Shown: positions 8,335-33,645, numbered from the whole stretch's first letter. The stretch: DNA of 62,938 nucleotides, filler included, from Lenisia limosa (GCA_001655205.1; 8 parts of 8 records of this genome joined end to end with filler, not necessarily neighbours in it), one strand, 5' to 3'. The notes: generated by a model from the sequence alone, not told the origin. Numbers and translations: made by a program.

Positions 8335-10904
8335 GTTTTCTCATTCTTTAATGGGTGCGAGTGCAAGGATGTGGAATGCAGAATGACTGAGGCAGCCAAC
8401 GGCGATCTGTTATGCACTGGAAGCTGTCCAAACTGTAAGTAGTTTCGCTGACTCTATTTTCAATATTTCTTACACTATAGCAACAATATTTACAATCCAA
8501 TGATGATATGGACGAGTTCGGCAAGATAAAACTATTGTATTTAATTGAAATTTGTGAAAATTGAAAATATTTGATTAACTATGAGTTTCTTACAATTTCG
8601 AAATAGAAATACTTTTGTTGATAAAGTTGCAATAGGGAATGAGATGGAAGGCAAGTACATATATACATAGCTATACCTGACTTTAAAAATTGTACCATTT
8701 ATTGATAAACAAGCTTAACTATACAGCTAATGACAGTCATAATAGTATTCACTGCTGTAGCTAGCAACACCAACCCACTATTCTGCGAGCCCATTTTCTC
8801 AGAAGGTCAACTAAAGGAATGCAAATGCCAAGGAGGTAGGTGATTGGTTTGATTAGTTGAAGTATTGGGAATAGCCTGATTGTAGATTCACGAGGAAAAT
8901 ACCATACTTAATGTGAATACAATTTGTTTTGTATTACGTAAGTGAATGTCTTTGAATTAATCCTTAGGTGAGTGTTTTGCCCACTATTCTCCTCCACCGA
9001 CTGGATGGCATTGCGACTTGCCAGATTGCCCTGAACTGGTGCGAGGATTTGAAAATATTTGGTTTGATTATATTTTTACACCAAAATATTCATTAATTTT
9101 CACATTGTTTTAGAATCAAAATTGTACTGCGTTGTACTATGAGAAGGAGGGCAAAAAGCTCTTCAATGGCTGCGACTGCATTGACAAGCCCGATCGTATG
9201 CAAAAAGGGAGCTTAAATATTAGAAATTCAAATAAAATGAAGGGGATATTGTTGTATTATTGAAAATGATTTAAGGATTCCGTCCGGTCCCGTACCAAAT
9301 TTTCTGATGAATTTTCGATAAATATCAATATTTTGCCAGATTTTTGTGCCTTTGATAATCCGTAATGTAATTAATAGTACATTACAAATCGCTAATGCTC
9401 TATCCCAGATAATTGTTTTCATCTTCAGTGGATACTTTGATTGCTCATTGACAGGATTTCTTTGCTCGCTAAAATAGTTCAACAACAGTTTTCTTACTGG
9501 AAATCGTTTATTTCATAGCGTGTCGTATCGAGAATAACGCCTGTCTTGGAACTTGCCCCAATCCTGATGACGTGAGTTGGAAATGGCATACTGGTGAGAT
9601 ATTTTGTACAAAAAATGTCCACGTTAAGTTTTATTAATATCACAAATCATTTTCAATACTATTATACATATTTCATCTCGCTGGGCCTACGTGGAATTCA
9701 GTTTGTGTCCGTGAAATGATTTTTTAAGGAATTTGATATTTTTTTAAAATACCAGTGTCCTATTCTGATTACAATACAATCATTGATGCAGCATTGTGTT
9801 GGCCACTTTGTCAACCACAGACTTGCACATTGCACATGTTGTGAATGCGAACCCCCTTATGACCCATGTGAAAGTTGGACTCGGATCAAACGCTTTTTCT
9901 TCCGTCCCAAAAAACTCTTTAATATTTGAGTAAATACTGTATAATTGAGTGTCAAACACAATTTTCCATCAAGGATTCAGAATTGTTTGAACCTCGATAA
10001 AATACTGATATTCAAATTAATACATAAACGTTTGGAACCGAAAGTAAAGATCTACATAAGACTATTATTAAATCAATAACATGTATGAATGGAATTTTGT
10101 CTGGAGTATGATATTGTTTGATTCTTGATTAGAAATAGCAAAACAATTAGTTGCAAAATTTGAAGTGGGTCCATCTATTTCGGACACTTTAATTTCAGAC
10201 GAACTTAATTGCACGAAGTCGTACTAATGATCTAGAATGCCACCTTGAGTACTACAACAACCATCCCTATTGTACTGGAGACTGTCCTCCAGGATCGCAT
10301 TGTAACCTAGTTCAAGGTTCCAACACCATGTTCTGTGCTTGTGCTGGTATGCCTTATCTAGGGCTTCACTTCGGTTCGAAAACCGACTTTCTTGATAAAT
10401 CCTCAAAAACTATCAATATTGTCCCGATCTTTTTTGAACCGAAGTGAAACCCTAGCCTTATTCCTTCTGTCAAACTCACACTACACTGTCTATGTAACTC
10501 TTCATCACCCCACCCCCCAAATGATATACCGCCTCACTCTAGTAAAATGACTGTATTTCACATAGAATCATCGGTATAATTCGATAGTTTGAATTCCTAA
10601 TCAAACTCAACAAGAACTTTTCAAAATAATAATCGAGAGTTGTATTTGATAATTAAGATTTTCAAATAGAAATTCGGTAGTTAAAAACTGCCTTTTACAT
10701 GTCAAAATATACATTTATATGGGATTCCAAGGCATTCTTAGGAATTCTCTAAATTTCTCTTGTATATATCAAATAAACTATTATATGTAACAAATGGAGT
10801 CCTTTTCAAAAGAATCCAAAGGTATTGACCGGTGTTATTTTAGCAAAACTATAATATTCAATTTATATGTTGTAGCGATCCTTCCTCCTCCCAACGGCCG
10901 GTAA
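8335..10904 (+). CDS. Cys-rich 6-Cys-module protein, paralog 1, 5'-incomplete (exons 8335-8434, 8761-8835, 8968-9038, 9114-9195, 9519-9571, 9792-9873, 10236-10346, 10876-10904)
   Basis: Eight GT-AG exons (603 nt) join in frame: VFSFFNGCECKDVECRMTEAANGDLLCTGSCPNSSNTNPLFCEPIFSEGQLKECKCQGGECFAHYSPPPTGWHCDLPDCPELNQNCTALYYEKEGKKLFNGCDCIDKPDPCRIENNACLGTCPNPDDHCVGHFVNHRLAHCTCCECEPPYDPCEKCHLEYYNNHPYCTGDCPPGSHCNLVQGSNTMFCACAAILPPPNGR*. Exon sizes match paralog 2. Confidence 0.88.
10360..10453. mobile_element. MITE family 1 copy in a paralog 1 intron; further full or partial copies near 747, 1415, 4775, 6520, 12580, 20790, 28575, 28845, 29686, 42433, 42880, 46516, 54686
   Basis: agggcttcacttcggttcgaaaaaccgactttcttgataaatcctc...gaaccgaagtgaaaccct; the core aaattcagtcttttt and tcgataaatcctcga recurs at the listed sites. 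Confidence 0.8.
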
Positions 10905-11144
10905 CTCAAAGAAAGTGATGCTCATTCCAAGCTGACCTCTGTTGACATTATACTCTTTAACTCTTCAGTTATTATATCGTCTTATTATTGCTAATATATA
11001 TTGTTTGTTACCGCTCTTTTAGGATCAGCTGAATCCCAGAATGGAAATTCGGAGTGTCACTATTATCCCATTTGGGGTACAGATTATGGATTTTGGATTA
11101 ACTTGACGTGAGTTCATTTATTTAATGCTCGGTTGAGATTACCT

Positions 11145-11288
11145 CTCTACGGCGCATGGACTTGGGATTCCCTATGATATGGGAGTTTCATAAATATCTT
11201 CAAATTTCCAGAAGTTTCCATGGATTTCCCATGTAAAATTTGGAAATTCCAACGTTTTCACAAGAATCCCAAGTCCGTTGTGCTAAAT
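11145..11288. mobile_element. MITE family 2 (~135 bp, TIR c(a/t)ctacggcgcat(g/c)gacttgggattc); other copies 16226-16364, ~23420-23515, 24831-24964
   Basis: Shared internal sequence (ttcccatgtaaaat.tgg.a.ttccaacgttttcacaagaatcccaagtc) and inverted termini; the 24831 copy begins CACTAC and ends GTAGTG. Confidence 0.75.
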
Positions 11289-12058
11289 AATGAGCTAATA
11301 GAGTCAGACAATTCAAAATAAATTATCAATACCAATTCCACCACTGTAAAGTTCGCTTATGTTAATGTAGAGTAAAAAACTAGAAAGCCAGAAATTAATT
11401 GTGCGAAGGAATACATAACAGCAGATGGGAAAATGATGCATTTATATGCAAATTTACAGTTTTTTTGACAAACTTAGAAACATTCTTCTAGAAATAATGA
11501 CTTAACCTTAGAAATAAATAATCAAACAATACAATAGTATCAATATAGTTTTACCTTATTTATCTATTTCTAAATGTTGTCACTGTAATAAATATTTGAT
11601 CAATTATTGATATCGAGTATTGTTCGAAACTTTTTCGAAAGTAGCATTTCTGAGAATTGTCGAAAACTATCAAGAATTGTCGAACACTTACTGGGATTTA
11701 GGTTGTTGCTAAAACTGAGTCAATAATCGTTTGTCATTGATTTTGATGAGTATATCTGCAGGTTTGATGATATTTTAAACATTCGATTAACAAAATTGAA
11801 ACTGAAAATGAGGACTTTCCATATCAGGAAAGTAGCCTTTTTTCAGATTTCATATTGAATTTTTCAGACTACAAACAATTACATCAAATATATTGAGACC
11901 CGTGATTGTGTGATATTATAGTGAAATATATTAAGTGAATTTTCAGGAGTAATACATCGCAAAATCCTTCCCCAAATTGAATTTGAAATTGGTTTCAACT
12001 TTTTCCACATTGTGTCCTTCTTGTACAGCTCAAACCATTTTTGCTCAAATAATAAACT

Positions 12059-15000
12059 ATGTTACCTTCCAAGTTTTGGGTGTTTCTCTTGTTCATCGTT
12101 CCTGCAGTTTTTGGTAAGCCCAAGTGGATTCGTACAGTTGTATTCGAGTGTTCAAATGGTAATATCTAGTAATTACCTCTGGTACAAATGTAATCGATGT
12201 TGAATTATAATCTCACATCCCCTCATATGATAATAAATAATTGACGGATAAGTCTCAATAATACTCTACACTCGGGATTAACTCGCCTGTTTTCTCCATT
12301 TATTATTTCAACTCGAAATTCAGATATGATAGGAAGTAAAATATCACCTTGGTGAAATATGTTAATATGACAAAATCAGTAAATTATGTTTTGAAAACAT
12401 AATTGTGTAAAAGTTAATGAGCAACATTGATATAAATTGATCACCATTATATAAATAATATCAATTAAAGTGTGTGAATATATTAAAAAACGCTCTGGAA
12501 ACTTTTTTTGCTTTTGCGTGGTGATTAACTTGTTATTTCAAAGAGATCAAGTTGTATAAATAATAATAATTATTGCTTCACTTTCGGTTTATCGAGATGT
12601 ATCCAGAGATCATTCGTTTTTTGAACCAATTGAAAAGTTTTAAACCTATTAAACCAGATGCGAGTCCTATATAACCATGATATATAACCTACATAGCTTA
12701 TCTACTATTTTCAAACTCTGATATTATATGTTTTGCACACTTACATTTTAGCGCAGTGCAAGATTGTGGTAGAAGATGGTGTCAAGACTTGTCAAGGTAG
12801 TGGAGTGTTTAATCCTCAGTTATATGCTTTGAGTACATTAATATATCAATTAAGTTATTCAGGTCCATGCAGAGCAAGAACCGACAAATGTTTGCCTACA
12901 TTTGATGACGTTGGAGACTTAATCGAATGCAAATGCGCAGATCCTGTATGTAAGGGTGTGAGAGTATTGTAATCTGAGTGTCAGAAAAACTTGTGTTGAC
13001 GCATTTCCACAAGTTATATGATTATATGACAAACTTTCAAAGATAACATGATTGTCATCCCGAGTGTATCAGGGTATCATTGAGACTTGTTGGTCATATA
13101 TAATACGAGTTGATATGAGGCATCATCAAATAACTAGTGTTTCAAAAAGTGGTATTATTTAATATACTTATGGTATACAGTAACCAAATCGGTTAAGACT
13201 TACCGGGTCACTGAATATATTCATTCAAGTCGTGGGAATAAAATGATCAGCCGGATAGAACCTTTTATTATTCTTATCTCTCTTTCAATATACAAGAATA
13301 CACATAATTTCAACAGGGCGTGGACTGCTATCCAGACTGGGGTAAGGATACTGGATGGTCGTGCAAGGGTGACTGTGACACTGATACTTTGGATTGCGTT
13401 CCCGCTTTCGGTACAAAAGTCTTGGATAATGGACAGGTTTGCTTTTTCAGTAACGTCTTTTTAAAACTAGGTTCATATATCAATACTCTGCTGTTGAATG
13501 TACACTAAAGAAATCACCATTTAATACTTAGTAAATAGTACTCATGCAATTTTAGCTGGTTTAGGGACAGTTTACTAGAGCTACAGGCATTAATTATAAA
13601 TTCCTTCCTTCATGTTGATGAAATTGTATAATTTTATATATAGCTTATATGTATAGTCAAAGCTCCGGACATCATTCAAAATTCCCGGACACATCAAAAC
13701 TCCCGGACAGCTTGAGTTTTTCCCTACAAAATCACCATAAACCACCCAAAAACCCTATTTCCCTTTTGTTTTCGAAAGTAATCTCAATCTTAATTAAAGC
13801 ATGAAACCCCAATTTAACATATTGTCGGGTCAAAACCAAATTAAGTCCCTGAGCTCTCTGTTAATGGTCCAAATACTGTCAAAAACAAGCAAAAACCGTT
13901 ATAAGGCCACATTCAAGGAATAAATGGCAACTACCCTTGTAGACAGTGCTATTTTGAGCAATTTTCTCTCAAAATTCACCATTACATAGCCAAAGTAAAG
14001 TGGAACCCGGAACCAAATACTCCGAGGGGTGCAAATTTTTGTTTCTTAACACTTAAAGAGGGTAAGATTCAGAAAAAAATCCTGTGAAAAGGCAAAAGGG
14101 GGACCCCCGGGAGACCAAATTCACGGATTTTTGACGTTTGCTCAAAATTGAAAAAAAAAGTTAGGGAACATTAGGAGGACCATTTCTCTTTGTATCTGTC
14201 GAAACAGATTTTCAAAAAACACTAGCAATGGCCTATACAAGGCATTAACTTCAAGCTGTCCGGGAGTTTTGATGTGTCCGGGAATTTTGAATGGTGTCCG
14301 GAGCTTTGAGGACCCACATATATATTATATCCCTTAACATTAAAGATACAGAAGACTGTTTATTCATCAACACAATCTTGCAGATTATTTCCTTCAACAC
14401 AAATAACAAATAATATTTCAGATTATTTCCTTCTTCAAAGGATGCGAGTGCACAGATGCACACTGCAGAATGACAGAGGCTGATAACGGTCAACTGTTCT
14501 GCACAGGTCACTGTCCACTATGTGGGAAGCTAGGAATTATATTGTTTTATGATAACTTTCTTAGGTGTTTTTCATTCTTGGAGGTTGTTATAAATAATTA
14601 TGTTCTTAGTGATTACTTCCTTTATCCTCTAAGGTTTTTGATAATTATCATCTTGTGATACTATTTATTTATGTTGATAACTTTCTTTGTCCTAACGGTG
14701 AAATGATTTTGTGAACAATATTTCCATAAGCATGATGGTGTGGATGGCTTTGGCCAGATACAACCTTTTTTGTTTGTCATCTTTATCCACGAAATGAGTA
14801 TGATATAACTATCTAGCAACTCCTACGAACAGGCAATTCTGTGAGCCGATTTTCTCAGAAGGACATCTGAAGGAATGCAAATGCCAAGGAGGTCGGTGGC
14901 ATTGATTGTATTTAAAGCATCTCTGCATTCAAATCTTCGTTTTCATATTAAATATTTTTTAAAAAGCATGTATTCAACTTTTTTTAGCATTTTAAATGTA

Positions 15001-17471
15001 ATTGTCCAACGCAATCAGAGGAAAATCAACAATTTCACGAATTTCTGAAAGTTTAAACATTTTATTGGAGAAATAGATTTTCTTGTGCCTAGTTTTTTTT
15101 AAAAACAAGTCAAACTAATAAATATATCGATATATCATATATCTCACCCCCGACCCCATGCCCCATGGGTGTATATATTGTGTNNNNNNNNNNNNNNNNN
15201 NNNNNNNNNNNNNNNNNNNNNNNNNNNNNNNNNNNCTCCCTAGTGCACACCTGTATTGAAAAAAACTAATGTTAAGCACACTTCTGCATCTAAAACTATT
15301 TTTTGTCGAATATATAATTTCAACCATTTGTCATTCAAACCATTGGTTTGAGAAAACCTTTAATTGAACCTTTAATATGATTAAATATGATCCAGGCACG
15401 TGCTTTGCTCATTATTCTCCGATGCCGTTTGGATGGCATTGCGACCTTCCGGATTGCCCTGATCCGGTGAGGGGATTTGAAACTTACGTATTGTTGATCG
15501 AGGTTTCTTTCCTATCTAAATTGTCATATTAGTGTGGAATTAAGCTTAGACTGAATCGATTGATGGTATTAAACTTGTAGATTGTTTACTCACAATTAAT
15601 ATTACTCGATGCTTCAAAATTGACTCCATTGAGGGTAAATGTTTCATTTTTCAAGTTATACAAAATATAAATATTTATATATAGCTCTATGTAGGTACAA
15701 CTAGAATTAATGTTGTCGCATGTTTCTGGAGTTGAATTATCACACTAATACTTTCGACATTTTGACGGCTTCGGTCAGTTCCCTCTTGACATCATGTATA
15801 ACGGGATTGTTCCACCAAATTATTTATATCGCTTGTACTTGATACTATAACAATCAGCCTATTGTATTCAATGATCACCAAAATATTAGATATCGATATG
15901 TATTTCTAGTTTAAATGTTAAAATAATTGTATTAATTACAGTTTTTAGAATCAGAATTGCACTGCGTTGTACTATGAGAGGGAAGGTAAAAAGTTCTTCA
16001 ATGGCTGTGACTGCATTGATAAACCTGATCGTAAGTTGACTTGATTACAATAGAATCTAGATAATAATAAGAAATTCGTTTATTTCTTAGCATGCCGTAT
16101 CGAGAAGAATGCCTGTACTGGAACCTGCCCTAATCCAGATGACGTGAGCTGGAAATTTGATAAAGATGTGATTGTGGAATGTATTAGAACTGGACTCGGT
16201 GGTGTTAGCTGAATATTCCTCGGACTACTACGGCGCATGGACTTAGGATTTCCTTGTATGACATGACAAATTTCTTCGAATTTCTATCAAATTTCATGGG
16301 ATTCCCATGTCAAATATGGTAGTTCCAACGTTTTCAAAAGTATCCCAAGTCGATGTGCCATGTATATGTTTTGTCCAATTAATCCGAAAGGACATATTAA
16401 TCAAAATTCTCAATACTCCCCAAGGTAAATGTAGATTTTTATAATTCACAAAACACTGAAATATCAACAAACAAGGAACCGACCAACACGGTGATTCATT
16501 CATGAAAATCTATTTCAAACAATCACTAAAATCACAAATTTAGCATTGTGTTGGTCACTTTGTGAACAACAGACTTGCTCATTGCACATGTTGCGAATGC
16601 GAACCACCTATTGGCCCGTGTGAAAGTTGGGCTTGGTTCTTAAATATGAACAGGATACTTGACCTATTAGTATTTTGTTTTCCCTTGTAATTTGGTTATG
16701 ATTTATCACAGTCTGTGTATGAAATATATGTATGATATAGTATATACATGTAATATACTATATAGATTTTTGAAAATTGTTAAGAATTGGAAGAAATATT
16801 TGTTTTGGATCAGGAGAGAATTGACCAGTCCGAACACAGTTATAAATAGTTCATTGAGATTTGCGTTGTTTTGCTTAGCAATATTCAAGAATCATGTATT
16901 TTACACCAAATCATATAATTTGTGAAGCTAATATGAGACTACCTCTCTTACAAGCATGATGTTGTTGACTTCTTCGGTTTGAGTTATTTTCCGTCTCATT
17001 TTTTCCTAGTTTGTCACCTCGAATTCTATAACAACCGTCCACTTTGTGTTGGTGAATGCCCCCCTGGAACCGACTGTAACCTTGTGAAGGCGAACGACAC
17101 AATGACTTGTCGTTGTGGAGGTAAGCCTCCATCAGATATCAGTGCTGTAATCCAAGCTGATTGAAAAGTGTAATAAACTTTCCTACCACATGATTGCACA
17201 TTTAGAGTGATTGTGTTATTTTGATTTGTTGATATTATAATAATGCTTTACTCGGTCTAAAAATATATTTTAGTATACTATGATATAAATACCGTTGATT
17301 TATCGAGAAATTCTGTCATTTTCTGGATCGGAGTAAACACATATCATAGCCATATGAATATGATAATCTAAATTCTTGGTAATATTTTTTGTTTTTCCCC
17401 TGCCATTTTTTGATACATTTTTCAATTTCTTACTCTTTCCAGCAATTTTCGACACTCCTGACGGAAATTAA
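12059..17471 (+). CDS. Secreted Cys-rich 6-Cys-module protein, paralog 2, complete, 12 exons, 301 aa
   Basis: Exons 12059-12113, 12752-12796, 12863-12945, 13317-13436, 14422-14521, 14817-14891, 15396-15466, 15949-16030, 16091-16143, 16544-16625, 17010-17120, 17443-17471 (906 nt). Signal peptide MLPSKFWVFLLFIVPAVFA, then six modules from QCKIVVEDGVKTCQGPCRARTDKCLPTFDDVGDLIECKC to CHLEFYNNRPLCVGECPPGTDCNLVKANDTMTCRC, ending GAIFDTPDGN*. Confidence 0.92.
13654..14309. mobile_element. Non-autonomous TIR element family 3 (~650 bp, ~55 bp TIRs with internal ccggac subrepeats); other copies ~47664-48183 and 58414-58656 (left part only)
   Basis: Left caaagctccggacatcattcaaaattcccggacacatcaaaactcccggacagcttga; the right end is its reverse complement. 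Internal sequence is near-identical among the three copies. Confidence 0.85.
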
Positions 17472-18248: not shown

Positions 18249-21200
18249 ATGTTTACTGCCAAGTTCTGGGTTTTCCTTTTGTTCATCATTCCAACAGTTT
18301 TTTGTAAGTGTGGATTTGGAATCTCGTTTATTCATTAACTAAATTCTCACTAAATCCTTCATTTGTAAAATTATGAAATATTACTATTTGAATGTGAAAT
18401 ACCTTCACGTGTATTGTTGACATTTGTGGTTGTTTATTTGAGGTAGAGGCTCAGACTTAGTAGTATATCGTTAAGTCATCACATTACTATGTGGCATCAA
18501 CATTTCTTCTTATATATAGTATTATTTTTGTCTAATATATAAAATAAATATTTAAGCTACAAATATAGTACATATTTTCACTAATCTTGAAGTTAATTAT
18601 AAACATTTTAACTAATCCCACAGCCGCATGTAAACTGTTTAATAAAAAAGGAGTTAAATTCTGTCAAGGTACGTAAAAAGGTTTAAGCATAAAGAATATT
18701 TTGACAATTTCCGTTTCGTAGTAAAACTGAAAACACAACACTATTTAGAATAGCATATAATATGATTCTCTATAAGATTTATCACGTATCCTCCTCATAA
18801 GAAATCACATTTTCTGGAGGTGAAATGTGAACTTTGAGTGGGTAGTATGTAATAATTAAAAATAAGAGAAATGTAAAAACTGTCTGGGTAACAATCTGTG
18901 TCTTGATTTGTTGCAATGATTGTAAAGCGGCACTTTCAATGAAAAACCACTGAATGTCTGTAGGAGGCTGTCCTGGAGGTAATGGCAAATGTGTACCTAT
19001 CTTCGATAATGTTGGCGATGTTCGAAGCTGTATATGCACGGCACCGGTGAGTGGAGTAAGAATGGGAAATACATAAATATAAACGTGGGATAGGAAATAA
19101 ACATAGTGCATATTACAACAAAAAAAGAAAAAACTAAAATAGAGAGAGAATGAGTGTGAACTCTTATGTTGTATATTCTAAGGCGCATTGACTTCAAACA
19201 CTCGTATTGTTTGAATATTACAACTTGTATAAAATGTAGAATTCTACATATGGAAATAAGTCTAAATTATATTATACTATGTACATAATAACCAGATCAG
19301 CAAATAATTGCAAATACTGGTGGTACTTAGAGCAAAGTTTTACTTAGGCAATCATAGTTGTTGCTATTCAAGTGAATCAAGAGCATCTATGGGATGAGCG
19401 ATTTTGTTTTTCCTGTAGCATTTTGTATGTATTCATATTTCATTATATGTTTCAGTTTCTTTGTATCAAAAGAGTCCCTAAAACTGACGCTCCGCAGGGT
19501 GTCGTGTGCTACCCATCCTTCAAGCAAAACTCTGGGTGGTCGTGCATGGGTGATTGTGGCAGCCCAAGCAGGGATTGTGAACCAGAATTTGGCAAGCGCT
19601 TTCTGCCAAATGGAGAGGTATGTTCGTGTTTTGTCGATTACTATTATCAATCCAATATCTCTATATGCGTGATGGTGATGACGGCTTTGGCCAGATACAT
19701 TCTTATTTTTTATTTCCCATTGCCATATATATATATGGATAGGTGCTGTAATATATTTCAAATTATAATGTATTTGAATTGGAGTATTTTGATTGTTTCA
19801 GATTACTAGTAAATACGAAATGGAGATGTACTGGTTTATTTGTCTAGATAACATACTATTTTGCTTCCCAATGTCCCACATATATAATATTCTTGATAAA
19901 TAATAATACTGTATTCTTGATAAGTCCTCTAACAAAATCGATACTCAACCGATCTTGTTCGGACTGCAAGGAAGTTTTAATTATTATTCTTGAAATGGAC
20001 AGGTCCCTCTCTTTTGTTTATCTTATGACAATTCAGGTTATCTCTTTCTTCAAGGGGTGTAAATGTACAAACGCAGAGTGTAAAATGACTCAAGCCGATA
20101 ACGGACAAAAGATTTGTGCTGGACACTGTCCAAATTGTGAGTATTTAGATAACTTTGGCTTATTTTGTTCTACAAATAATGAGGTTTGACAAGTGAGAAC
20201 GTCCAGTCGCGAACTTGTTTTTCGCGAATGTTCTTAACTAGCTCTTTCCTATGGTAGAAAAAGCAGTGGAAATATCGATATACTAATTGACGATTATTGA
20301 ATAATTCCTTAATTACTCGTAGTACGAAAGCCTTATTGATAACCCTCTGCTGCCAAGAACCTAATATTTTAGCAAGTCCCAGTAATACCGAATTCTGCGA
20401 GCCCATTTTCTCCAAAGGTCAATTGAGGGACTGCAAATGCCAAGGCGGTAGGAGGGATTAGACTGAGCGTAGCTGATTTGATATCAAGATGACATACAAA
20501 TGTAATATTTAGAGTACACCGAACTCTACTTCAACTTAATTCTTGTATAATTTTGGATATACATGTACGTGAAACATTTTTTCTCTTATAACCTAAAACT
20601 TGAGGAGATAATGAAACTAGTATCCAACATGTTGCATTGTGATGCGAAACATTCGAGTGAATTTACTAAGAACATACCAGAATCAGAAAAGGACCCCTGT
20701 AATTCCATTCCTAAACTCCTAACTATGACTACATACTTTGAAAGGGTTATGGTCCTCACTTTGGTTCCAAAATAGCAGTGTTATCGAGGATTTATCGATA
20801 CATTTAGTCGTGTTTCGAACTGATATAAAGCCCTTTTTATATGTTTTGTTAAACGCCCTCACTATTTAGGCACGTGCTTTGCGCACTATTCTCCGCTGCC
20901 TTTTGGATGGCATTGTGACTTGCAAGATTGTAACAATGACGTTTGCTTTTAGTCTTTATCTTGCTTTTAATGAAAAATAGAAACCTTAGTTTTTTATTTT
21001 ATTCTATAAAAATGACAAATTCAAAAACACTTGTTTATATCCAAATGGAAAATCACTCTTAATCAATATAACTTGTAATTGCTCCAGAGTTTATCTAATT
21101 GAAATACTCTTGTTATGGACTGAATTGAATGTAAGCAAATATTTAATTGTTTAGAAGCAGGAGTGCAAAGAGCTATACTACGTCAAAGATGGGAAAAGAG

Positions 21201-24200
21201 TCTTCAACGGCTGTGATTGTATTGACAAACCCAATAGTGAGAAAAATGAATATGTGTTACAATGTTGAGATTCATAATATAATTGGGCTAATATCTATAA
21301 TTCAAACAAAATTCTCTTACTGTGTCAGACGCAGTGTGAAGAAATAGAAGACTTAATTTACTCTATAGATTGTCGAAAAGAAAACAATATGTGTGTTGGA
21401 CAGTGCCCAAATTGTAGGTGATGAATGCATCACAGTTCCAATGGTTTCATCAAGGTTACAAAAGTAATAGCCAATGCTAACTAATCCTAAAATTTGTTAA
21501 TTAACTTATCGTAGTGAACTTTTCACGGACCAATAAATAATTCTCCAAGCTTTAACACAATTTCTATACATTTAAATTTACTTTTGCTTTCTATATTATA
21601 ATTATTAATCATAGTATATTGTTTCACATTTTATATAATTTGTATAATATATAATGTTGTTATAATGTCACGCTAATATGATCAATACATTAATGTGATA
21701 TTAAATGCTGTTTATTACAATAATTTTAGCAAGCCCCAGAAATCCTCAGTATTGTGAGGCCATTTTCTCCAATGGTCAACTACGTGACTGCCAATGCCAG
21801 GGCGGTAATGTGATATTTTTGAAAGTAGTTTATTTGATTAGTTCCAACGTTTTATTCAAATACTCGTATAAGGGCTTGATTCAGTGTTTTATTTAAACAG
21901 ATATAGGTTCCAATTTTGTAACATCATCTCACATTTTGGATCATTTTCACATACTACTCCTTGAATTATCGAAGGGATATGATACCTCATATACATAAAA
22001 ATGACAATTCCAACAAGTCACAATGATACTCTGATATATTCATTCCTTAACTTGGTCCATCATGTTGACTTGAATACCAGTCACGGTATATCGTTTTATA
22101 TCAATAGAAGATGTGGGCTAACATTTGCATGCAACATACTTGAACTAATTATGATGTCACACAAAATGCACATATCTAGAACTTTTTTGAGAACTCAAGG
22201 AATCCCTAATCACCACTTTAGGAACCTGCTTTGCCCACTACTCTAAGGAGTTGTCGGGATGGCATTGTGACTTACCGGAATGCCCAAACGGAGTATGTTA
22301 ACTTTTCAGACGAGTTTTTATTGTCATCTCAAGGCACCATCGATTTGTAATTCCCATGTGTAATTTGGTTATCCAATACATTTCTTTTGATTTTGATATC
22401 GATATATTATTACGATTGTCTTGTAAATTATGGTAATCCACCTTTTCATAAGAACACCAAGTCAAATCACGATAACGATGTTGTAGGAACAGGTTTGTAA
22501 AGAACAGTACCATGTGAAGAACGGAAAGAGGCTATTCAATGGCTGTGATTGTATTGACAAACCCAATCGTAAGTAAAAGGGAATATTTTTGGTGAAATAA
22601 ATATGTGGCCAATCTTGAAAATATTGTAAAAATGAATTTGGGTAATATTGCTATAATATACATATATTTTTATTAGAAGGCATAAGTCCCCGTGTGAGTG
22701 CGACCGCAAGTATGAGTGTGATAACAGAGCTGCCTACTTGTGACGCAAAATTCCTCTTTCGGCAAAAAATCAATAACAATTCCTAAAAAACGAGAATTTT
22801 GTATGATATATAATCATTTATATATTTTGAATTTTTATTTGTTCTTCTCTACATTCTAAAGGATCAACTTGATTTACAACTTAGCTTGTCGAAAAGAAAA
22901 CAATATGTGTGTTGGACAATGCCCAAATTGTAAGCGAGACAAATTTCAAAGTAATTACTAGATTATTCATTGGAAATAATTTCTTTAAAAATAATTTCCA
23001 CCCATCCCACACATCATATTTGGGGGGGGGGAGTTGATGGGGTTATTTGAATAAATATTGACATCAACTATTTTCAATTATGTTAAATTTCGCAATAGAA
23101 TTGACTAGGCATGGTTTGAACCTTGTCATTTACAACTTCTTCTGGACTTGATTATTCATAAACTTCCCTTCTTTATTTTTACAATTTAAATTTTGTGACA
23201 GTTTGTAGCAACTTTACTTACGTCAAAAAGAAGTACCAAATTTGGTTGTCAAACTAAGCTCTAATGCAGATTTTTCACATCATTCAATTTGTAGCAAGCC
23301 CCAGCAATCCCCAATTTTGTGAACCCATTTTCTCCGATGGCCAACTTCGGGACTGCAAGTGCCAGGGCGGTAGGCGGAATTAGTTTTGAGATAAATGATG
23401 TACATTTCACATTATTAGGGAAGCAAATAAACTTCTTTAAATTTCCATAAGATTCCCATGTAAAATATGGGAATTCCATTGTTTCACAAGAATCTTAAGT
23501 CAATGTGTGCCACAGTACTTTTTCACAAATGCGTGTTTTCTTTTGTTGATCGTGTCGGCACTTAACGGCAACTGTCTATACTGTACCTTTCAAGCTGAGA
23601 ATATTTTATGTATAAAGGCTTTTCCCTGAGCTTTAAATTATCATGAATGTAAAACTCCAATTGATGTTGTTAGGTACTTGTATTGCCCATTACTCTCAGA
23701 AGCTTGGATGGCATTGCGACTTGCCTAATTGCCCTAAGGAGGTTTGTTTATTCTATTTGAGAATAAGATAATACTTCACAGGTTGTTTTTGTAATCATGT
23801 AATTATTTATATTGCACTTCGTATTAGTGTGATAAAATATGATAACATTACAATCAACATCTAAATTTAACGATGTTAACCTACAGTGAATTATAGTCAC
23901 TAAATATTCGCAAGCATTTTACTAATATATGTACATGTATATGTACTCAACATTACGATTTTGTAAAAACGATGTAGATTCATAAGTCTATTTCATATTG
24001 TAGAACAAGGAATGTAAAGAGCTATTTCACGTGAAGAACGGGAAGAGGCTTTTCAATGGCTGTGACTGTATTGACAAACCCAATCGTAAGTAAAAGGAAA
24101 TATTATTTTGGTGAAATAGTTATGTGGCCAAGCTTGAAAATTTTATGAAAAGAGAGTTTGTGTTATATTGCTTTAATTCATATTAATATTACACTTGGGC

Positions 24201-27200
24201 ATATTATTTAAACATTTTGAATATTTATTTTGTTCTTTTCTAAATTTTAAATGTTATGTCAAGTTGATTTACAACTTAGTTTGTCGAAAAGAAAACAATA
24301 TGTGTGTTGGACAATGCCCGAATTGTAAGCGCGAAATATTTCCAATAGCACACCTCCCTCCAACCCCAGCAACATAATTGTGGCCGGTGGAAGGGGATGG
24401 TAGTTGACGGGGTTACTTGTATATATAGTGACCGGGATAAGTTTTTGTCCTAATTTCCTTGGTAAATCAGAGAGCAAATCGGTTAAGAACTATCCCGGTC
24501 ACTGTATATTGACATCATTTATTCTCCATTTATTTAAATTTCGCCATGGATCCCACTAATGATACCTTGTCTCATCTGGAACTTCTGGACTTGATTATAC
24601 ATAAAAACCCCATTAACTGAAATATGGGTGTGGGTGTTGGCAACTTTACTTATGTCAAAATGAAGTACAACAGCTCTAATGCAGATTTTCTATTTACACA
24701 AAAATTATTCTATTTCTAGCAAGCCCCAGCAATCTCCAATATTGTGAGCCCATTTTCTCCGATGGTCAACTTCGAGACTGCAAATGCCAGGGCGGTAAGG
24801 GGAATTACTTTGGGGGATTTTGTGGTTGAACACTACTTGGGCTTCTTGTGAAAATGTTGGTGTTCCCATATATTACAAGGAGATTCCATGAAATTTTATC
24901 AAAATTTGAGAAAATTCACGGGTTTTCCAAAAAAACGGGAATCCCAAGTCGATGCGCCGTAGTGAAGAGACTGTGGATATGGATATAATAAATATGAAGT
25001 AGTGGTGGTGAGTTTTCTTTGCTTTCTTACAAATGTCTGTTTTCTTTAGTTTACCGTGTAAGTATAACTGCACTTTGATACTTCAGCTTTCAATCAGAGA
25101 ATATCTTGTGTAATGTAAAACTCAAAGCTCTTGACAAAATCTTGAAATGAGTTACAGAAACAATCACCAATATTAGGTACTTGTATTGCCAATTACTCTC
25201 AGAAGCTTGGATGGCATTGCGACCTGCCTAATTGCCCTATGGAGGTTTGTTCATTCTGTTTGAGAATAAGATAATATTTCACAGGTTGTTTTTGAAACCA
25301 TGTAATTATTTATATTGCATTTCGTATTGTCTGATGATATTGTACACCATTACAATCAACGATATTCACTTTTGGTGAATTATTGTCACTAAATATTCGC
25401 AAAATCGTATAACCTATGTGAAGTCATAAGTAATCTACTCTTAATATTTCTCTACAAATTTCATGTTATATAAAATATAATAAAACATACATGTACATAC
25501 ATGTATATACCCAGCTCTATTTCATAGTGTAGAACCAGGAATGTAAAGAGTTATTTCACGTGAAGAACGGGAAGAGGCTTTTCAATGGCTGTGATTGTAT
25601 TGACAAACCCAGTCGTAGGCAAACTAAAGGAGAAGAATATTAATTCATGGGTTTAAAATACCTCTGAACTATTGCGCACTTCAAGTGATTCTTATGCTAC
25701 AATCTTAACAAAAGAAATGAAGGATATCTGTTAAATTTGGAAACTATAATACTGTTATAAATTCTCATGTTGATATGATAAACAAATTCGTTGTGGAAAA
25801 ACTATTAACGATTCGTTTAAAAGAACTTCTATGATTTTAATTGATAAAACTGAAATTATAACATGATTTATTTTAGCTTGTCGAAAAGAAAACAACATCT
25901 GTGTTGGAACTTGCCCTGATTCTGATGAGGTAAAATGGGATATATTTCCTTATTTAGTTTGTATTTTATCTGTTTAGAATTGCATTGGGCACTATCTTAA
26001 TAGCAAGCTCGACGTATGCAGATGTTGCGAATGTGATCCCCCTCCAGAACCGGGTTTGTGGCAAGTATTTATCAGAATGGGACTGTTTTTAGGGCTTTAT
26101 TTCAGTGAAAAAATATCAATGAAATAGCAGTATTGGTCGAAATGTATCGTTAACTCAGTCACTTTTGTAACTATGGAGACGCTTGAATAATAAATAATAC
26201 TATGAGACACAAATGTCTATGACAAAAGGTGCATGCTGGGGAGGCACGCAGAAAGCTGTGTGCACAGAGTTGTAAAGCAAATGCTTGGGTGAATTAATAT
26301 TATTTTATAATCCAATATCTCTTATTAGCGTGATGATTTGGACGGCTTTGGCCAGATACATCCTTATTTGTTATTTCTCATTGCTGTATATTATAAAAGT
26401 TAAAGTCCATAATTTATCCATTTATGATAACACAACAGAATATTGCCCCCAAAATATCATATGATACTCATAATTCAACTGGAAGACTTTCCTCAAACTT
26501 ATATTTTTTTCTCCTAAATCAGCCATTTACAAAAATACATAAACCAAAACTTCAGAAGAATCCCCTCCATTTCAATTTGTATTCCATATCTTTCCCTTAA
26601 ATCAACCATTTATGTTTCCCCTAATTCAACCAGAAGATTGTCATCTTGAGTTCGCCAATAGGGTACCGAAATGTGTTGGGCAGTGCCCAGGTACATCCAG
26701 ATGCAGACTCCTTTCTGGAACGGCCTTGTTTTGCGCGTGTACTGGTTAGTGTATTTAAGAAAATAGTAATGTTTGTGTCATATGGAGCGCTTCCATCTGG
26801 CCTGGATTATAATTTATACCTATAAAATATTGATATTTATTGAAGGTATTTCAATATTCAGTTGTATTTTGTCATTGACCCGAAGCGGTAATCGTGGTGT
26901 ATTTAACAGATGAAATTTCTTAATGTATCATTAAGATTCCAATCAGGACATTCCCTCCACCATATTCAATACATGTGGTCTGTGAGATGATTTCGTGTAA
27001 TTATTTAAAACATTAATTTTGAAGGAAACAAATATAACAAGACAAATTTACAACCATGGTACTAATTATTTTGATAGAATTATAGGATACCTTCCAATTA
27101 GTTTTATGAAATCAATTTTGAAATTTAAGTGTCTAAAATAGAGTTTCTTTGACTGTATTTCTCACTTCAAGTTTAATTGAATATTTCAATTAATTGCACA

Positions 27201-27268
27201 GATTTTTAAAAATTATATCTTATACGACTACGCCTCACTCTCCAGCGATTCTCCCTGGAGACTTGTAA
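18249..27268 (+). CDS. Secreted Cys-rich 6-Cys-module protein, paralog 3, complete, 24 exons, about 568 aa, four internal exon cassettes (12 modules)
   Basis: Exons 18249-18303, 18624-18668, 18964-19046, 19498-19617, 20037-20136; cassettes [20373-20447, 20870-20940, 21155-21236, 21369-21413], [21730-21804, 22222-22292, 22487-22568, 22885-22929], [23295-23369, 23674-23741, 24004-24085, 24280-24324], [24720-24794, 25177-25244, 25533-25614, 25877-25929]; then 25978-26053, 26634-26744 (NAGNAG acceptor), 27246-27268. Signal peptide MFTAKFWVFLLFIIPTVFS; ends CACTAILPGDL*. Confidence 0.9.
24426..24504. mobile_element. MITE family 5 (79 bp, TIR agtgaccgggata, TA flanks)
   Basis: tagtgaccgggataag...ctatcccggtcactg flanked by TA; absent from the homologous intron at ~23040-23065; a remnant lies at 13177-13214. 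Confidence 0.75.
26244..26395 (+). repeat. Non-TIR dispersed repeat (~150 bp); other copies 14728-14765, 19640-19740, 29105-29250(-), 46690-46744, 55075-55160, 61222-61297, start at 37344-37312(-)
   Basis: gcacgcagaaagctgtgtgcacagagttgtaa.gcaaatg.ttgggtgaattaatatt...agcgtgatggtgtggacggctttggccagataca; no inverted termini seen. Confidence 0.8.
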
Positions 27269-28284: not shown

Positions 28285-31200
28285 ATGTTATTTTCCAAGT
28301 TTTGGGTTCTCCTATTGTTCATCGTGCCTGCTGTTCTGTGTTAGCCGGGAGTTGCTTCACATTTTTTAAAATGTCAATTAGTATTATTTTACTTGTATTT
28401 TGGAATCAAAACAAAATTTAAACTCTGTTGGAGAAGGATAACTTTTGGTTCGAAAAGACGTGTAAAGTCATGAAATTTTTCAAATATACTCGAAATACAT
28501 TATCGATTATTCTTCCATCATTGTGTACCCCTATTACAACCATGCAATCCTTTTCCCAATCATCTATTCTGAGCGTCACTTTCGGTTTTAAAAAAGACTG
28601 AATTCTCGATAAACCCTCTATAAATATCGATATTTTACAGGTGTTTCGGAACAGAAAGTGAAGCTCTAATCCATTCACTTTCTAGCGGCATGTAAACTGG
28701 TCAACAAGGATGGGGTCAAGTCTTGCCAAGGTAAGGGTTTCAGTTTCAGAGTCAATTAATGACTTTTTGTGAAAAGAGAGATAACATACACATTAGAAAT
28801 TTTGACAAATAAATACACATGGATACCATAAAAACATAAATAGGGCTTCATTTCGGGTCGAAAAAAGACGGGATTTCTCGATAAATCTTCGAAAGTTATC
28901 GATATTTTACCTATTTTTCCCCCTACACATAGCCATACTATCAAGCGTTTCGGTTTCACAGCTTGATTGAGTAGGTACATGTCCTGGCCGAAATGACAAA
29001 TGTCTACCCACTTTTGGCAGTACCGGAGATCTGATCGAATGCAAATGCGCTGACCCGGTCGGTGGTGTTTGATATCAGGGAGCGGTAGCTGGGACTCTCT
29101 GATTATATATAGCAATGAAAAATGAAAAATAAAGATGTATCTGGCCGAAGCCATCCACAACATCACGCTTATAAGAGATATTGAATTATAGTATAATATT
29201 AATTCACCCAATTATTTGCCTTTAAAATCTGTGCACACAGCTTTCTATGTGCCACTCTGTGATTGTTTGTTGGAGTTGACTGTATATTTGTTCTCAAACA
29301 CACCTCGAGACAAGCGATCATTTTAACTTTGACATTATTGTGTATTTGATTTTTAAACAAGAAAATAATAAAAAATAAATATGAAAGAAATTTTTTAGAG
29401 GAATAGCAAGGTGTGTGCCAGGAAGTATATTTGGGGAACTTTGAAAGGAGAAGGCTGTCTACTGGAATTGATTGACGGTTTCGATTGCATATTAATTGAT
29501 TATTGAATAATACTAATACTGCTTAAAATAACTTATTCTAGGGTGTGGATTGTTACCCAGCATGGAGATCCCAGACCGGGTGGACATGCAAGGGTGATTG
29601 CGACAGTGCCTCTTTAGATTGCGTCCCGGCTTTTGGCCAATACACCGACTCTAATGGACAGGTTTGATTTTGAGACTTGTTGTGCAGGGCTTCACTGGTT
29701 CAAAAGTGACCGGTAAAGTATCGATAAGTTTCGAGGATTTATCGAGAAATTCAGTCTTTTTCCAACCAAAGTGAGGGCCTACTTATGTGGCTTGTCTGAG
29801 ATTTTTGAAGCAATGTTAGGCGAGTTTTTGGCGATGGTTTTGGGTTAAGGGAGAGGCGTGTCCCTACGTATGTATTGGAACAATCAAAGTTCAAATTACC
29901 TCCTTTCAATGCTAGTCTAAATTCCTTCCGTCAGGGGTAGTCCGTATTCGCTCTTTTAACAATGACATTAAAGCGGGAGTCCCACTAAATTTGTGTAACC
30001 TAGTTCATAGATTTGGGGCCTATACAATTTGACCAATATTACAATTTGACCAATATTTCAGGAAAATAAATTCAAAACGACAAAATAATGTTTTCCTATT
30101 CTCTTTGATTTTGTCTCAGAAAAGTGTGCATGTTTCTTGTAATATGCCATGGAAAAGCGGGAGAAATTCCAAAAAATATTGTTTTCGCAGTTTAATTGGA
30201 CTTTAACAATTTCATCATCAGAATTGAATATTCTAGGTTCTCTCCTTCTTCAATGGCTGTGAATGTTCAGACTCGCAATGCAAAATGGGCGAGGCAGACA
30301 ATGGTCAAAAGTTCTGTGTCGGTCGCTGTCCAAACTGTAGGTGCTATTTGCAACCTTTTCAGTGATTTTTTCTACTTTGAAATTTTTGGGATTTTTTATT
30401 CTACGGCTAAAATGATTTTTTAAAGTGCTATTTGTCTATAATCAGGACTATTGTAGTTAAATTTTGTAGCCAGTCCCACTAATCCCGAATTCTGTGAGCC
30501 CATTTTCGCTGATGGCAATCTCCGGGACTGCCAATGCCAAGACGGTTAGTAGACATATTATCTTCATATGCGGTACATATAATTTTGTTAAATTGGCACA
30601 AATAAGACGACTGTGGATATTACAAAAACTAACTTGTAATTTACAATTGAAACTATTGATCGGTGCCACTAGCAGGCTAATTTCTAATTTCAATTGGTAC
30701 ATACCAGAAATATAATTAATTTGAAAATTTGCCATTTTACATGATATATGTAATAGTTCTCTTTATATGGACAATGATATAATACTTTGTAATCAGCTGC
30801 CATTTACACACTACTGTTGCTTTTCACAACAACACTTCGAGTGATTTAACCACAATGCATCGAATGTTTGGATGTAGTATATCGTACAATTCATATTATG
30901 AGGAATCTGATAAATTTGAAAAAGTAACATAAAAGACTGGGTACATGAAAAATCACTTTAAAATTAATTGTACCAAGTCAATGCTCTAATTAGGGCTCCA
31001 GTTTGAAAAAAGACCGATATAATATTGGTAGTTAACTAGTATTTTTCGAAGTGGCGCTAATGCATTTAGGACCCTGCTTTGCCCATTATTCGCCACAGCC
31101 GTTTGGATGGCATTGTGACCTGCCTGATTGCCCCGATCCAGTTGGTGGGGATTGTATTTCACAGTTGGTAGGGATTTCGCTATTTTGAGTTGGTGGAAGT

Positions 31201-33645
31201 TTCAATATTTTGGGTTTCACAGTTGAAGAATTTAATATTTTGAGTATAAGTGTTCCTGTATTCTCTCATATCGTGCTTCTATGTGTATTACCTCATTCAA
31301 ATATTTGAGTTTGACAAAAACACTAAGTGGCTTAGAAGGGTTTCTTCGATTCATGATTATTTGTATATTTACCCAAATGTTAAAGAAATTTCCTTTGCTA
31401 AAAAGCCCCGTTCACCCTCATTGCTGTGGGGTGGAGATCGGGAAATGTGACAATGTATATTAAATTTTTGTCATTTTTGAGGCTTCACATTAGATCCTGC
31501 TTCATCAATTTGGTGAAAGTGAAATAACAAAAACGACCAAATTTGAAATATATATACGAAGTTGGTGGGCCAACTTTGGCTAATTTTGTGGAGAAATTTA
31601 CTAAAATATCAATGTGTCATCAGCTTCGATTTGATATTACTTCCTTGTCATATGGCACAATTTCACATGTAGGAACACGAGTGCAGAGCGCTATACCACA
31701 CAACTGGAACTAATAAACTCTTCAATGGCTGCGACTGTGTTGGCAAGCCGGATCGTAAGCAAAGGGAGATGCTTTAACACTTAGATTTATTTAAAGCATG
31801 CAAAACCCCCATATTTTGAGAGCAGTGACTCTATGATTCTACAAATTGATATGTTACAAATCTATATTCAAATTCCTATTTCCCTGCAAAAAAGACATTG
31901 TATTTATTACGGGAACTGTATATGATATGTAGTGATGAAAAGTCACGCATTTGTAAGTGCTTTTGCAATATAAACAAAAGCAACCATCTAAAACTGTGGA
32001 TATTCGATAAATTTTGAGTATAAATAACCTCATAGCATGTCGCATTGAGGACAACGTCTGTCTAGGTACATGCCCTGACTCTGATGATGTAGGCGGTCTT
32101 TGAAGGAACGATAATATGACTCACCTAAAAGCTGGGTAGTTTTGCATGTAAACTTCTATGAACAAAATTCAAAAATAAGTCAATTATCGATATGGAAGGC
32201 ACTTAATTGACTGTAGCATTTCGTCGGGGTGCGAGTGGTATTATACAAATATTGAAAAATTCAACGACTATTTTTGCAAAAAGACCACAGCTTTTGTGTA
32301 AAATTATCAAGTGAAAGGTCGAGTATTACCTGATATGGAATCCCACTGATATATGTAGCATTGTGTCGGACACTTTGTCAACAAGAAGCTAAAAGAATGC
32401 AGTTGTTGCGACTGTGAACCCCCCGAAGATCAATGTACCGGTACGGCTATTATTAAAATGTAAAAAAATAGTCAACAACTTGATTTTGACGGTTTAAATT
32501 CAAGCGTTCACATTGAGTTGTTTTATATCTCTTTCTGATGTCACAAACTTGATTAAAACAAATAATCGCCTTCGTTTTCATATTGGTTGCTATGTAAAAT
32601 ACTCAAGATATACAAGTCTTGACCGATTGTCTTGGGAAGTCATCAAGACTTATCTCGGATGTATATTGTCTTGTTATCACCTGTCCCATATACATATGTA
32701 TATTCTGGTAATCCCAACTTAATAAGAATCCAAAGTCAGGGAGTGTTTAGTTAACTCCTTATACTGTCTTTGAGATTTATAATAGATGCATTTTACTCAT
32801 GTTTCTGAATACAAATAACTCTCAAGATTGTCACATTGAGTTCTATGATGGAGTACCACTCTGTGCGGGAGTTTGTCCAGGCTCATCAGTCTGTAAACTT
32901 GTTCAGGGAACTGCCTTGTTCTGCGCTTGCACCGGTAGGCACCAGGGACACAGGGTTTAATTTAGGGCCTCTATTTGATCCAAGAAATACGAAAAAAGAT
33001 AATAGTTTTCTTGAATATATCAAAAAAAAATTAGTCTAGTTTAGGACCAAAGTGAAGTATTCTGTTTTCTATTAGGACTCCGTGCGAATAGTTATTGACA
33101 AAATTGCAAACTGAAGAGAGTGAAATGTTACGACTACAATATTCCTGGTAGTTCTGTTATTATCTTTCACTGACCGCATGTTTATGAAGTTTTCAGGGCA
33201 TAAAGATGTATATATTCAAGCTAATCACCGAATTTATCAGATCATGCAGGATTTTGAATTAAACTACGGTCATATGGTATTAGTAGAATGGTTTGAACTA
33301 GAGAGCTTCCATACAATTCCAAAAACACCGAATTTCTCAAGAAACTTTTCGATCATTTCGAAATTTAAAAGACTTTTTCGGACTGGAGGTTCCCAAAACA
33401 AATTTGGAAGTCGACTCCGCAAAGCTCGGTGTACTTGACCTATGTATACTTTTCATTGTTTTGAATTTTGATGATACCATGTTTTGTGTTCAAAAATTAA
33501 ACCGGTCTTGTCAACTTTAGAGCGCACTTGTCTATTATTGAGGGATCCCTTCTGACTTACCTCTGAAAATTCAAATTAAAAGAACATACTCGGCTTTTGG
33601 ATTGTAGTATCTCACTTTCTAGCAACTATTCCAGGCAGCGTATAA
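28285..33645 (+). CDS. Secreted Cys-rich 6-Cys-module protein, paralog 4, complete, 12 exons, 298 aa
   Basis: Exons 28285-28339, 28686-28730, 28975-29057, 29542-29661, 30237-30336, 30470-30544, 31070-31140, 31673-31754, 32036-32088, 32359-32440, 32827-32934, 33623-33645 (897 nt). Signal peptide MLFSKFWVLLLFIVPAVLS. Terminal exon ATIPGSV* was chosen by similarity to paralog 3 AILPGDL*. Confidence 0.9.

Follow-up and report, generated by a model that had tools for sequence, protein, structure and literature searches.

The window analyzed here is a 62,938-nt stretch of Lenisia limosa DNA (GCA_001655205.1; eight parts of eight records of the genome joined end to end with filler, not necessarily neighbors in it), read on one strand. 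It contains, in the piece at 7333–36464 (30–38% G+C, with three runs of N at 15184–15235, 34676–34792 and 35421–35549), 52 short plus-strand exons that assemble into four head-to-tail paralogs, which we call A, B, C and D (7, 11, 23 and 11 exons, respectively; Table 1). Every intron is bounded by GT..AG. On balance, we favor the view that these are four old paralogous genes for secreted proteins built of tandem, very small cystine knots.

The genes emerge when the stop-free pieces of the six frames are compared with each other, which gives four colinear exon series on the plus strand. When the pieces are anchored on conserved peptides, AG precedes and GT follows each of them, at a codon phase that does not differ between copies. 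The paralogs have identical exon sizes in common (55, 45, 83, 120, 100, 75, 71, 82, 53 and 76 nt, plus the last exon), and the spliced pieces give open reading frames with phases that match across paralogs. Landmarks on the plus strand are the motif KFWV[FL]LLFI[VI]P at 12071, 18261 and 28297, and the peptide NQNCTALYYE at 9114 and 15949. The hidden head-to-tail array with equal exon sizes and phases that the sequence-only reading had proposed is thus borne out by splice sites, open frames and colinear homology, the genes being hidden by the shortness of their exons. Its tally of 56 exons of 23–120 nt falls to 52, the four extra 3′ mini-exons having neither conservation nor RNA support. Its picture of four plain paralogs agrees with the homology and the phases but needs amending on two counts: gene C is internally expanded, and gene A has no equivalents of exons 1–4. 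Counterparts of these exons were not found within 7333–8334, the ~1 kb upstream of gene A, and the gene may be interrupted by the edge of the piece or may be a copy truncated at its 5′ side.

RNA data came from one small polyA run (46 Mb of contigs), compared with genes B and D. A single contig of 649 nt (depth 16) carries the gene B joints 14521>14817, 14891>15396, 15466>15949 and 16030>16091, and then leaves exon 9 at 16143 to enter the first bases of exon 10, a fifth junction. These junctions coincide exactly with the boundaries predicted from paralog conservation, and the junction support that the sequence-only reading had named as a check exists for gene B.

The genes are less well defined at their 3′ ends. 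A terminal mini-exon conserved downstream of the four last exons was not found in searches at the DNA and peptide levels, and the 23-nt terminal exon once proposed for gene D is one of many short open frames that start after an AG. However, a donor-like G|GT[AT][ATG]G stands directly after the last module in all four last exons, and the tail of gene A enters a repeat; on these grounds a further 3′ exon is possible in each gene. Exon 10 has two candidate phase-1 donors 6 nt apart (9857–9873 in A, 16609–16625 in B, 32424–32440 in D). With the upstream donor the cysteine count is even in B and D, but gene A (donor at 9867) acquires a stop codon; with the downstream donor, module 5 gains a ninth cysteine. 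Only the upstream type occurs in gene C. A reading in which a tiny "KCAC" exon separates exon 4 from exon 5 in gene D was rejected, as direct joining of the two keeps the phase and makes module 2 complete.

The paralogs are old duplicates under purifying selection. Between them, amino-acid identity is 58–73%, dN is 0.18–0.31, dS runs from 1.3 to saturated, and dN/dS is 0.09–0.16, far from the value near 1 that had been named as the mark of pseudogenes. Exon DNA is 57–88% identical, whereas introns are 43–64% identical over aligned columns, about the level of a shuffled control (46%); both the exon–intron contrast and the selection estimates should be read with the caveat that the exons were located through conservation. 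The earlier impressions of an old, constrained family, with conserved exons and introns that cannot be aligned, hold within that limit.

Gene C is a special case, with 12 modules against six in B and D. The difference is due to four copies of a four-exon block, among which dS is 0.22–1.8 and dN/dS 0.07–0.25. The extra modules are hybrids that combine the N-terminal half of module 5 with the C-terminal half of module 3, and the E9′ exons end in CPN|C, as exon 5 does. This resemblance of the E9′ ends to the end of exon 5 points to expansion by unequal crossing-over between exons 5 and 9.

The encoded proteins are simple in plan. The N-termini of B, C and D read M-x3-KFWV[FL]LLFI[VI]P[AT]V, with A or S at −1 and Val at −3, and in a hydrophobic-window scan this signal peptide is the sole hydrophobic stretch of these proteins. 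The three near-identical signal peptides and the lack of a transmembrane or GPI-type tail described from the sequence are therefore upheld, and B, C and D appear to be secreted, as judged from motif and hydrophobicity and with 3′ ends that are uncertain. The likely cleavage would leave one residue ahead of the first cysteine. What follows is 13–14% cysteine and consists largely of modules of 34–47 residues (~80–86% of all residues) joined by linkers of 4–9 residues; B and D have six, C has 12, and A has four and the end of a fifth. The module pattern is C1-x6-12-C2-x-G-x-C3-x5-10-C4-x9-20-C5-x-C6; all 28 modules end in CxC, and every one fits the looser spacing given at the outset, C-x6-12-C-x3-4-C-x5-10-C-x9-20-C-x-C. 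Module 5 has eight cysteines.

The register of the module is fixed by the mature chain, which begins at C1, by gene C, which stops two residues after C6, and by exon 11, which is exactly one module. Elsewhere the introns interrupt the modules: within CxGxC in module 1, in finger 2 in module 2, and after C3 in modules 3, 4 and 5. Module 6 alone is uninterrupted, and the profile, the fold model and the homology search were all based on its four-row alignment (A1). There are no dibasic sites in the linkers, and the KR/RK pairs of gene C fall inside modules; a processed multi-peptide precursor was rejected on these grounds.

The best structural reading of the module is a disulfide knot. The growth-factor cystine knot has a published signature, CXGXC plus CXC (PMC12203953). 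The full cysteine order of that fold, C..CxGxC..C..CxC, is present in all 21 modules of the window genes with a 3-residue C2–C3 spacing; the central glycine is found in 21/21 of these and in 0/7 of the modules with a 4-residue spacing, a dependence of glycine on ring size that a tight knot ring would require. An AlphaFold2 model of module 6 (pLDDT 93.6) has two beta-hairpins. Scanned against 48,161 PDB chains by a method independent of Foldseek, it gave 26 matches with Z >= 2, and all 25 of those listed are cystine-knot growth factors or antagonists, among them PDGF-B (Z 3.7), TGF-beta2, TSH/LH/FSH, NBL1, Gremlin, Norrin, VEGF, GDNF and sclerostin. The alignments cover 35–36 of its 36 residues at an rmsd of 2–3 Å. 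A model of a two-module segment from a bacterial relative (below; pLDDT 95.2, pTM 0.82) behaved similarly, with 16 of 17 matches at Z >= 2 being cystine-knot growth factors (Z <= 3.1); over both models the alignments span 35–46 residues, again at 2–3 Å. The module is thus probably a growth-factor-type cystine knot, a known fold rather than a new one. It had been called unrecognised, which is correct insofar as it has no Pfam match, but not insofar as it bears the textbook CxGxC and CxC ring signature.

We infer the disulfide topology, the independent folding and the extracellular function from this evidence, and picture the protein as follows. The signal peptide would be cleaved and followed directly by six (B, D) or 12 (C) modules with three disulfides each. 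Each module would fold alone into two beta-hairpin "fingers," an eight-membered ring would be closed by C2–C5 and C3–C6 (CxGxC plus CxC), and the C1–C4 disulfide would pass through it. On this model the whole protein would act outside the cell as an extended string of rigid, protease-resistant beads, whose number would grow by unequal crossing-over between homologous half-module exons.

The module family is not confined to this lineage, contrary to what the sequence alone had suggested. A search of 1.84 billion representative proteins with the module 6 profile gave six matches, three of them real: P0001 (2111 aa, E 4.7e-22), P0002 (2180 aa, E 1.3e-16) and P0006 (593 aa). The other three (P0003–P0005) are unrelated repeat proteins, and no eukaryotic protein, from the present genome or another, was among the matches. 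P0002 sits on an intron-less contig of bacterial type, and P0007, a cluster mate of P0006, is NCBI MHC5110197.1 from a metagenome-assembled genome (MAG) of Planctomycetota. Further searching brought up 36 giant proteins (1186–2429 aa; P0008–P0041 are among the set), many with dockerin repeats; the four whose source names are taxon-specific come from Phycisphaerae or Phycisphaerales MAGs. Scans of metagenomes with the module 6 alignment and a degenerate FNGCDCIDKP pattern, and of GTDB genomes with a P0001 segment, returned nothing.

The bacterial giants have up to 16 tandem modules, of two alternating types: C-x8-C-x4-C-P..C..C-x-C and CH[VIL]E[FY]..P.C.G.CP.G..C.L..DxDGDG..C.C. The glycine rule is present in them also (68/75 modules with a 3-residue ring, 0/51 with a 4-residue ring). 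Pfam and NCBIfam have no model for the module in these proteins; only Kazal was detected, in P0006. Module 6 is 40–51% identical to the second bacterial type and has H2, E4, P11 and L25 in common with it beyond the frame of Cys, Gly and Pro. A hidden Markov model (HMM) built from the bacterial modules gives module 6 scores of 22, 29, 13 and 12 bits in A, B, C and D; among cysteine-fixed shuffles (200 per protein), the top score is 2 bits in gene A and negative in the other three. A tree of modules places module 6 on the bacterial side of a 100/100 split, apart from the other 17 window modules. By these comparisons the module family is common to a bacterial phylum and this eukaryote. Tentatively, and with some reserve, we propose an uncatalogued family of mini growth-factor-type knots in tandem arrays, common to Phycisphaerae and the eukaryotic cluster, which would either have crossed domains or predate their split.

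Two features of the giants lie outside the modules. P0001, P0002 and P0008–P0012 (L001 5001–11543) have a long N-terminal array of another CC-containing repeat, CC..D/G..C...P.CC...GG, and a conserved C-terminal part ending in a cysteine cluster; neither part has a Pfam model. Within the modules, the bacterial finger-2 loop DxDGDG resembles a calcium site; the eukaryotic modules lack it.

Several results weigh against the interpretation given so far. On the structural side, the Z scores (<= 3.7) are under the level that the scanning tool's own notes call trustworthy, and neither Foldseek (against PDB, Swiss-Prot AFDB and AFDB clusters) nor an ESM Atlas shape search returned anything significant. 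The AlphaFold and Foldseek check on a single module proposed with the sequence-only reading is therefore divided, with a confident model, non-significant Foldseek matches and knot proteins only from the separate scan. The alignments behind the models are shallow (4 and 13 rows), and the models may echo the CxGxC/CxC pattern; the conotoxin paper cautions about such inconsistency (PMC12203953). No Pfam cystine-knot family matched at E <= 10 among ten exon pieces that included the whole of module 6, and the database scans covered such single-exon pieces. Of the modules, only module 6 is significantly similar to bacterial ones: modules 1–5 are not, and module 4 compares no better than shuffles with the bacterial type that has the 4-residue ring. 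As to the genes themselves, their 3′ ends are not fixed by a conserved terminal exon, and RNA support is limited to exons 5–10 of gene B, where the contig reaches exon 5 not from exon 4 but from a repeat-derived exon that has a TGA in frame. On gene D exons the one small run gave no RNA contig; contigs lay only on high-copy intronic repeats.

The sequence-only reading had proposed wall, cyst, scale, coat or adhesive proteins, which are candidate roles. The signal peptide without an anchor, the absence of a catalytic part, the short linkers without processing sites, and the conservation of each module type suggest that the role may be structural, adhesive or one of multivalent binding. The main functional rival is that the proteins are multi-headed inhibitors or binders of proteases or signaling ligands, each knot presenting a loop, as in multi-Kazal proteins or DAN-type antagonists. 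A typical multi-domain inhibitor has this plan of a signal peptide followed by many small disulfide modules with short linkers between them, and the bacterial relative P0006/P0007 joins such modules with three Kazal domains. DAN, Gremlin and sclerostin, moreover, are cystine-knot proteins that act as ligand antagonists. We consider this rival unlikely, though not markedly so: the Pfam scan of exon pieces detected no reactive-site motif or known inhibitor family, and the paralogs conserve each of the six module types, at the low dN/dS given above, unlike the hypervariable loops of inhibitors in an arms race.

The fold itself could be otherwise. The modules might be hairpins like those of EGF, FOLN or CREMP, paired C2–C4 and C3–C5 and closed by C1–C6, which would make these EGF-like tandem-repeat matrix proteins. 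The stretch P-x-C-x3-4-C-P-x-G-x-x-C-x-[LM] does match the two-disulfide modules of avian CREMP (PDB 9pgb) at E 0.004–0.06, and CREMP modules are EGF-like, with C1–C3/C2–C4 pairing. The top Foldseek match, itself non-significant, is the follistatin-like domain of SPARC, and the matches of an Atlas feature search, all with low scores (<= 0.77), include TILa/FOLN and Dickkopf_N/DPY clusters. Against this, the sixth cysteine of EGF comes at least 8 residues after CxC, whereas the present proteins begin at C1 and terminate immediately after CxC, with exon 11 running from C1 to C6. An EGF register in which the module starts at C2 is ruled out in the same way, the mature protein beginning at C1 and ending after C6. 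The strict link between glycine and ring size has no rationale in an EGF-type fold; EGF, FOLN and TIL have no Pfam match even at E 10; and EGF domains, although abundant in the PDB, account for 0/25 of the listed structural matches with Z >= 2. The EGF-like alternative is therefore rather improbable, and the statement in the sequence-only reading that the spacing is not that of EGF, pacifastin or TIL is consistent with both the lack of a Pfam match and the fixed register.

The likeness to the Phycisphaerae modules could be convergence from a tiny disulfide frame rather than common descent. The modules are short, module 6 alone scores clearly, and the extra DxDGDG loop of the bacterial copies is absent from the window genes. 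However, the common positions extend beyond cysteine (H2, E4, an aromatic residue at 5, P11, a proline after C3, a glycine two residues later, and L25), the module 6 HMM scores are 8 to 34 bits above the best of the 200 cysteine-fixed shuffles per protein, and both sets are tandem arrays in which 3- and 4-residue rings are mixed. Convergence thus appears doubtful to us as the source of the resemblance. Finally, that the cluster is decaying, some or all copies being pseudogenes or non-coding, exon-like relics, is suggested by gene A (no exons 1–4 in the available sequence, a tail that enters a repeat), by the stop-containing, repeat-derived exon in the sole RNA contig of gene B and by the lack of RNA from gene D in one run, but it is highly improbable, as none of the 52 exons has lost its open frame, its canonical splice sites, its phase or any cysteine despite saturated synonymous divergence, and five gene B junctions are used in polyA RNA from a run so small that absence means little.

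Under the preferred reading, that of a tandem growth-factor-type knot, one of the closest known systems is the growth-factor cystine-knot superfamily (TGF-beta, PDGF/VEGF, glycoprotein hormones, DAN/CTCK, Norrin, GDNF). The modules resemble it in the order of six cysteines, in CxGxC and CxC, and in the two beta-hairpin fingers predicted here. The known domains are ~90–110 aa and occur one per chain, whereas those described here are 34–47 aa and occur 6–12 in tandem, without the heel helix, the dimerisation cysteine or the propeptide, and with no Pfam match and Z of only 3–3.7. That a knot can exist at such a small size is indicated by the conotoxin sigmaS-GVIIIA (framework VIII), a 41-aa peptide with CXGXC and CXC for which NMR gave the growth-factor cystine-knot fold (PMC12203953). 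The conotoxin is likened to the modules by pattern and size only, and differs in being a single-domain venom peptide with ten cysteines that comes from a propeptide precursor and has no tandem repeats. The Phycisphaerae/Planctomycetota giants have the same CH[VIL]E[FY]..P.C.G.CP.G..C.L..C.C module, tandem arrays with linkers of 5–7 residues, and mixed rings; they differ in being bacterial, intron-less and 1200–2400 aa long, with extra CC-rich repeats, dockerin or Kazal domains, and the DxDGDG loop in finger 2. CREMP, Dumpy DPY and EGF-like repeat proteins (PDB 9pgb; bioRxiv 10.1101/2025.09.16.676614) are likewise secreted chains of small disulfide modules on short linkers, and CREMP matches the local hairpin motif C-x3-4-C-P-x-G-x-x-C at E 0.004. 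The CREMP and DPY modules, however, have four cysteines paired C1–C3/C2–C4, without CxC and without a knot.

Table 1. Coordinates, in the window, of the four paralogs, their exons and associated features
Feature	Coordinates	Strand	Remarks
Gene A, 5′-incomplete, exon 5 to last exon	8335-10447	+	224 aa, 29 Cys; colinear homology to B, C, D
Gene A exons	8335-8434, 8761-8835, 8968-9038, 9114-9195, 9519-9571, 9792-9873, 10236-10447	+	AG/GT splice sites, phases in common with paralogs
Gene B	12059-17164	+	304 aa, 38 Cys; signal peptide and 6 modules; five RNA joints
Gene B exons 1-6	12059-12113, 12752-12796, 12863-12945, 13317-13436, 14422-14521, 14817-14891	+	
Gene B exons 7-11	15396-15466, 15949-16030, 16091-16143, 16544-16619, 17010-17164	+	
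Gene C	18249-26749	+	562 aa, 74 Cys; signal peptide and 12 modules; 23 exons; predicted from paralog homology
Gene C exons 1-5	18249-18303, 18624-18668, 18964-19046, 19498-19617, 20037-20136	+	
Gene C block 1 exons	20373-20447, 20870-20940, 21155-21236, 21369-21413	+	
Gene C block 2 exons	21730-21804, 22222-22292, 22487-22568, 22885-22929	+	
Gene C block 3 exons	23295-23369, 23674-23741, 24004-24085, 24280-24324	+	
Gene C block 4 exons	24720-24794, 25177-25244, 25533-25614, 25877-25929	+	
Gene C exons after blocks	25978-26053, 26634-26749	+	
Fourfold internal tandem duplication, gene C	20373-25929	+	Unit [E6,E7,E8,E9′], period ~1.4-1.5 kb
Gene D	28285-32960	+	297 aa, 38 Cys; signal peptide and 6 modules; predicted from paralog homology
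Gene D exons 1-6	28285-28339, 28686-28730, 28975-29057, 29542-29661, 30237-30336, 30470-30544	+	
Gene D exons 7-11	31070-31140, 31673-31754, 32036-32088, 32359-32434, 32827-32960	+	
Proposed 23-nt terminal exon, gene D	33623-33645	+	One of many AG-started short ORFs (open reading frames); no counterpart conserved in A, B, C
Module 6 of gene D	32829-32936	+	Sole module type in a single exon
Module 6 counterparts	10238-10348 (A), 17012-17122 (B), 26639-26746 (C)	+	
Cryptic exon, intron 4 of gene B	14247-14293	+	46 loose RNA nt map to 14247-14292, then GT donor
Assembly gap	15184-15235	.	In gene B, intron 6 (flanked by exons 6 and 7)

The introns deserve some comment. The gap in gene B is written as 52 N; a 6.3-kb DNA contig from the same data spans it and has 12 letters more, which gives a length of ~64 nt. 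It is intronic and hides no exon, since the RNA joint 14891>15396 (GT..AG) crosses it. Intron 4 of the same gene has a 70-nt inverted repeat, with arms at 13646–13715 and 14251–14320 that are 91% complementary and 535 nt apart. Each arm contains ~2.8 copies of an 18-nt unit, and the right arm supplies the cryptic exon seen in RNA, in which an in-frame TGA is followed by an ATG at the junction with exon 5. An alternative start, a poison exon and splicing noise are all conceivable explanations of it.

Short interspersed repeats are also present in introns (28600–28640, 29125–29250, 29729–29762 and 14702–14768, with related pieces at 19580–19740 and 26276–26461). Their summed word depth in the DNA run is 20,000–100,000, against ~34 for single-copy sequence, and RNA contigs fall on them as well; they look like a MITE- or SINE-like element (a miniature inverted-repeat or short interspersed transposable element) with a copy number in the thousands. 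In gene A, the read-through sequence that follows the last module (10350–10547) resembles the repeat copies at 28844–28963 and 29654–29782. This similarity favors an intron or an untranslated region over a coding tail, the sequence right after the last module being apparently transposon-derived.

Downstream of the cluster and convergent with it lies, on the minus strand at 35145–36442, a gene for an AAA ATPase, in fragments (Pfam AAA, E 1.7e-7, at 36089–36442) split by two N gaps. Visual inspection suggests a 26S proteasome Rpt subunit. A 21-nt tandem repeat at 35940–36049 (5.2 copies, 93% match), one frame of which reads NSNLIII repeatedly, probably lies in an intron of this gene. Rfam has no RNA family in the piece.

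In sum, the fold is probably known, and what is new is the sequence family, the very small size of the module, the tandem-array architecture, and the distribution over bacteria and eukaryotes. If the knot topology is right, these would be the smallest repeat-forming growth-factor cystine knots and the first in long tandem arrays, and the module would offer a compact scaffold that is probably very stable. The cluster also illustrates how genes made of 45–120-nt exons escape ORF-based, prokaryote-style gene calling, and gene C is a clean example of growth in domain number through crossing-over of half-module exons, with hybrid modules as the product. The bacterial relatives bear on a wider claim, as a 2025 paper states that cystine knots have never been described in bacterial proteins (PMC12038028). 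If the kinship proposed here is true, the growth-factor cystine knot, long held to be confined to eukaryotes, exists as a bacterial repeat module, and the eukaryotic copy would since have gained introns inside the module and expanded by duplication of half-module exons.

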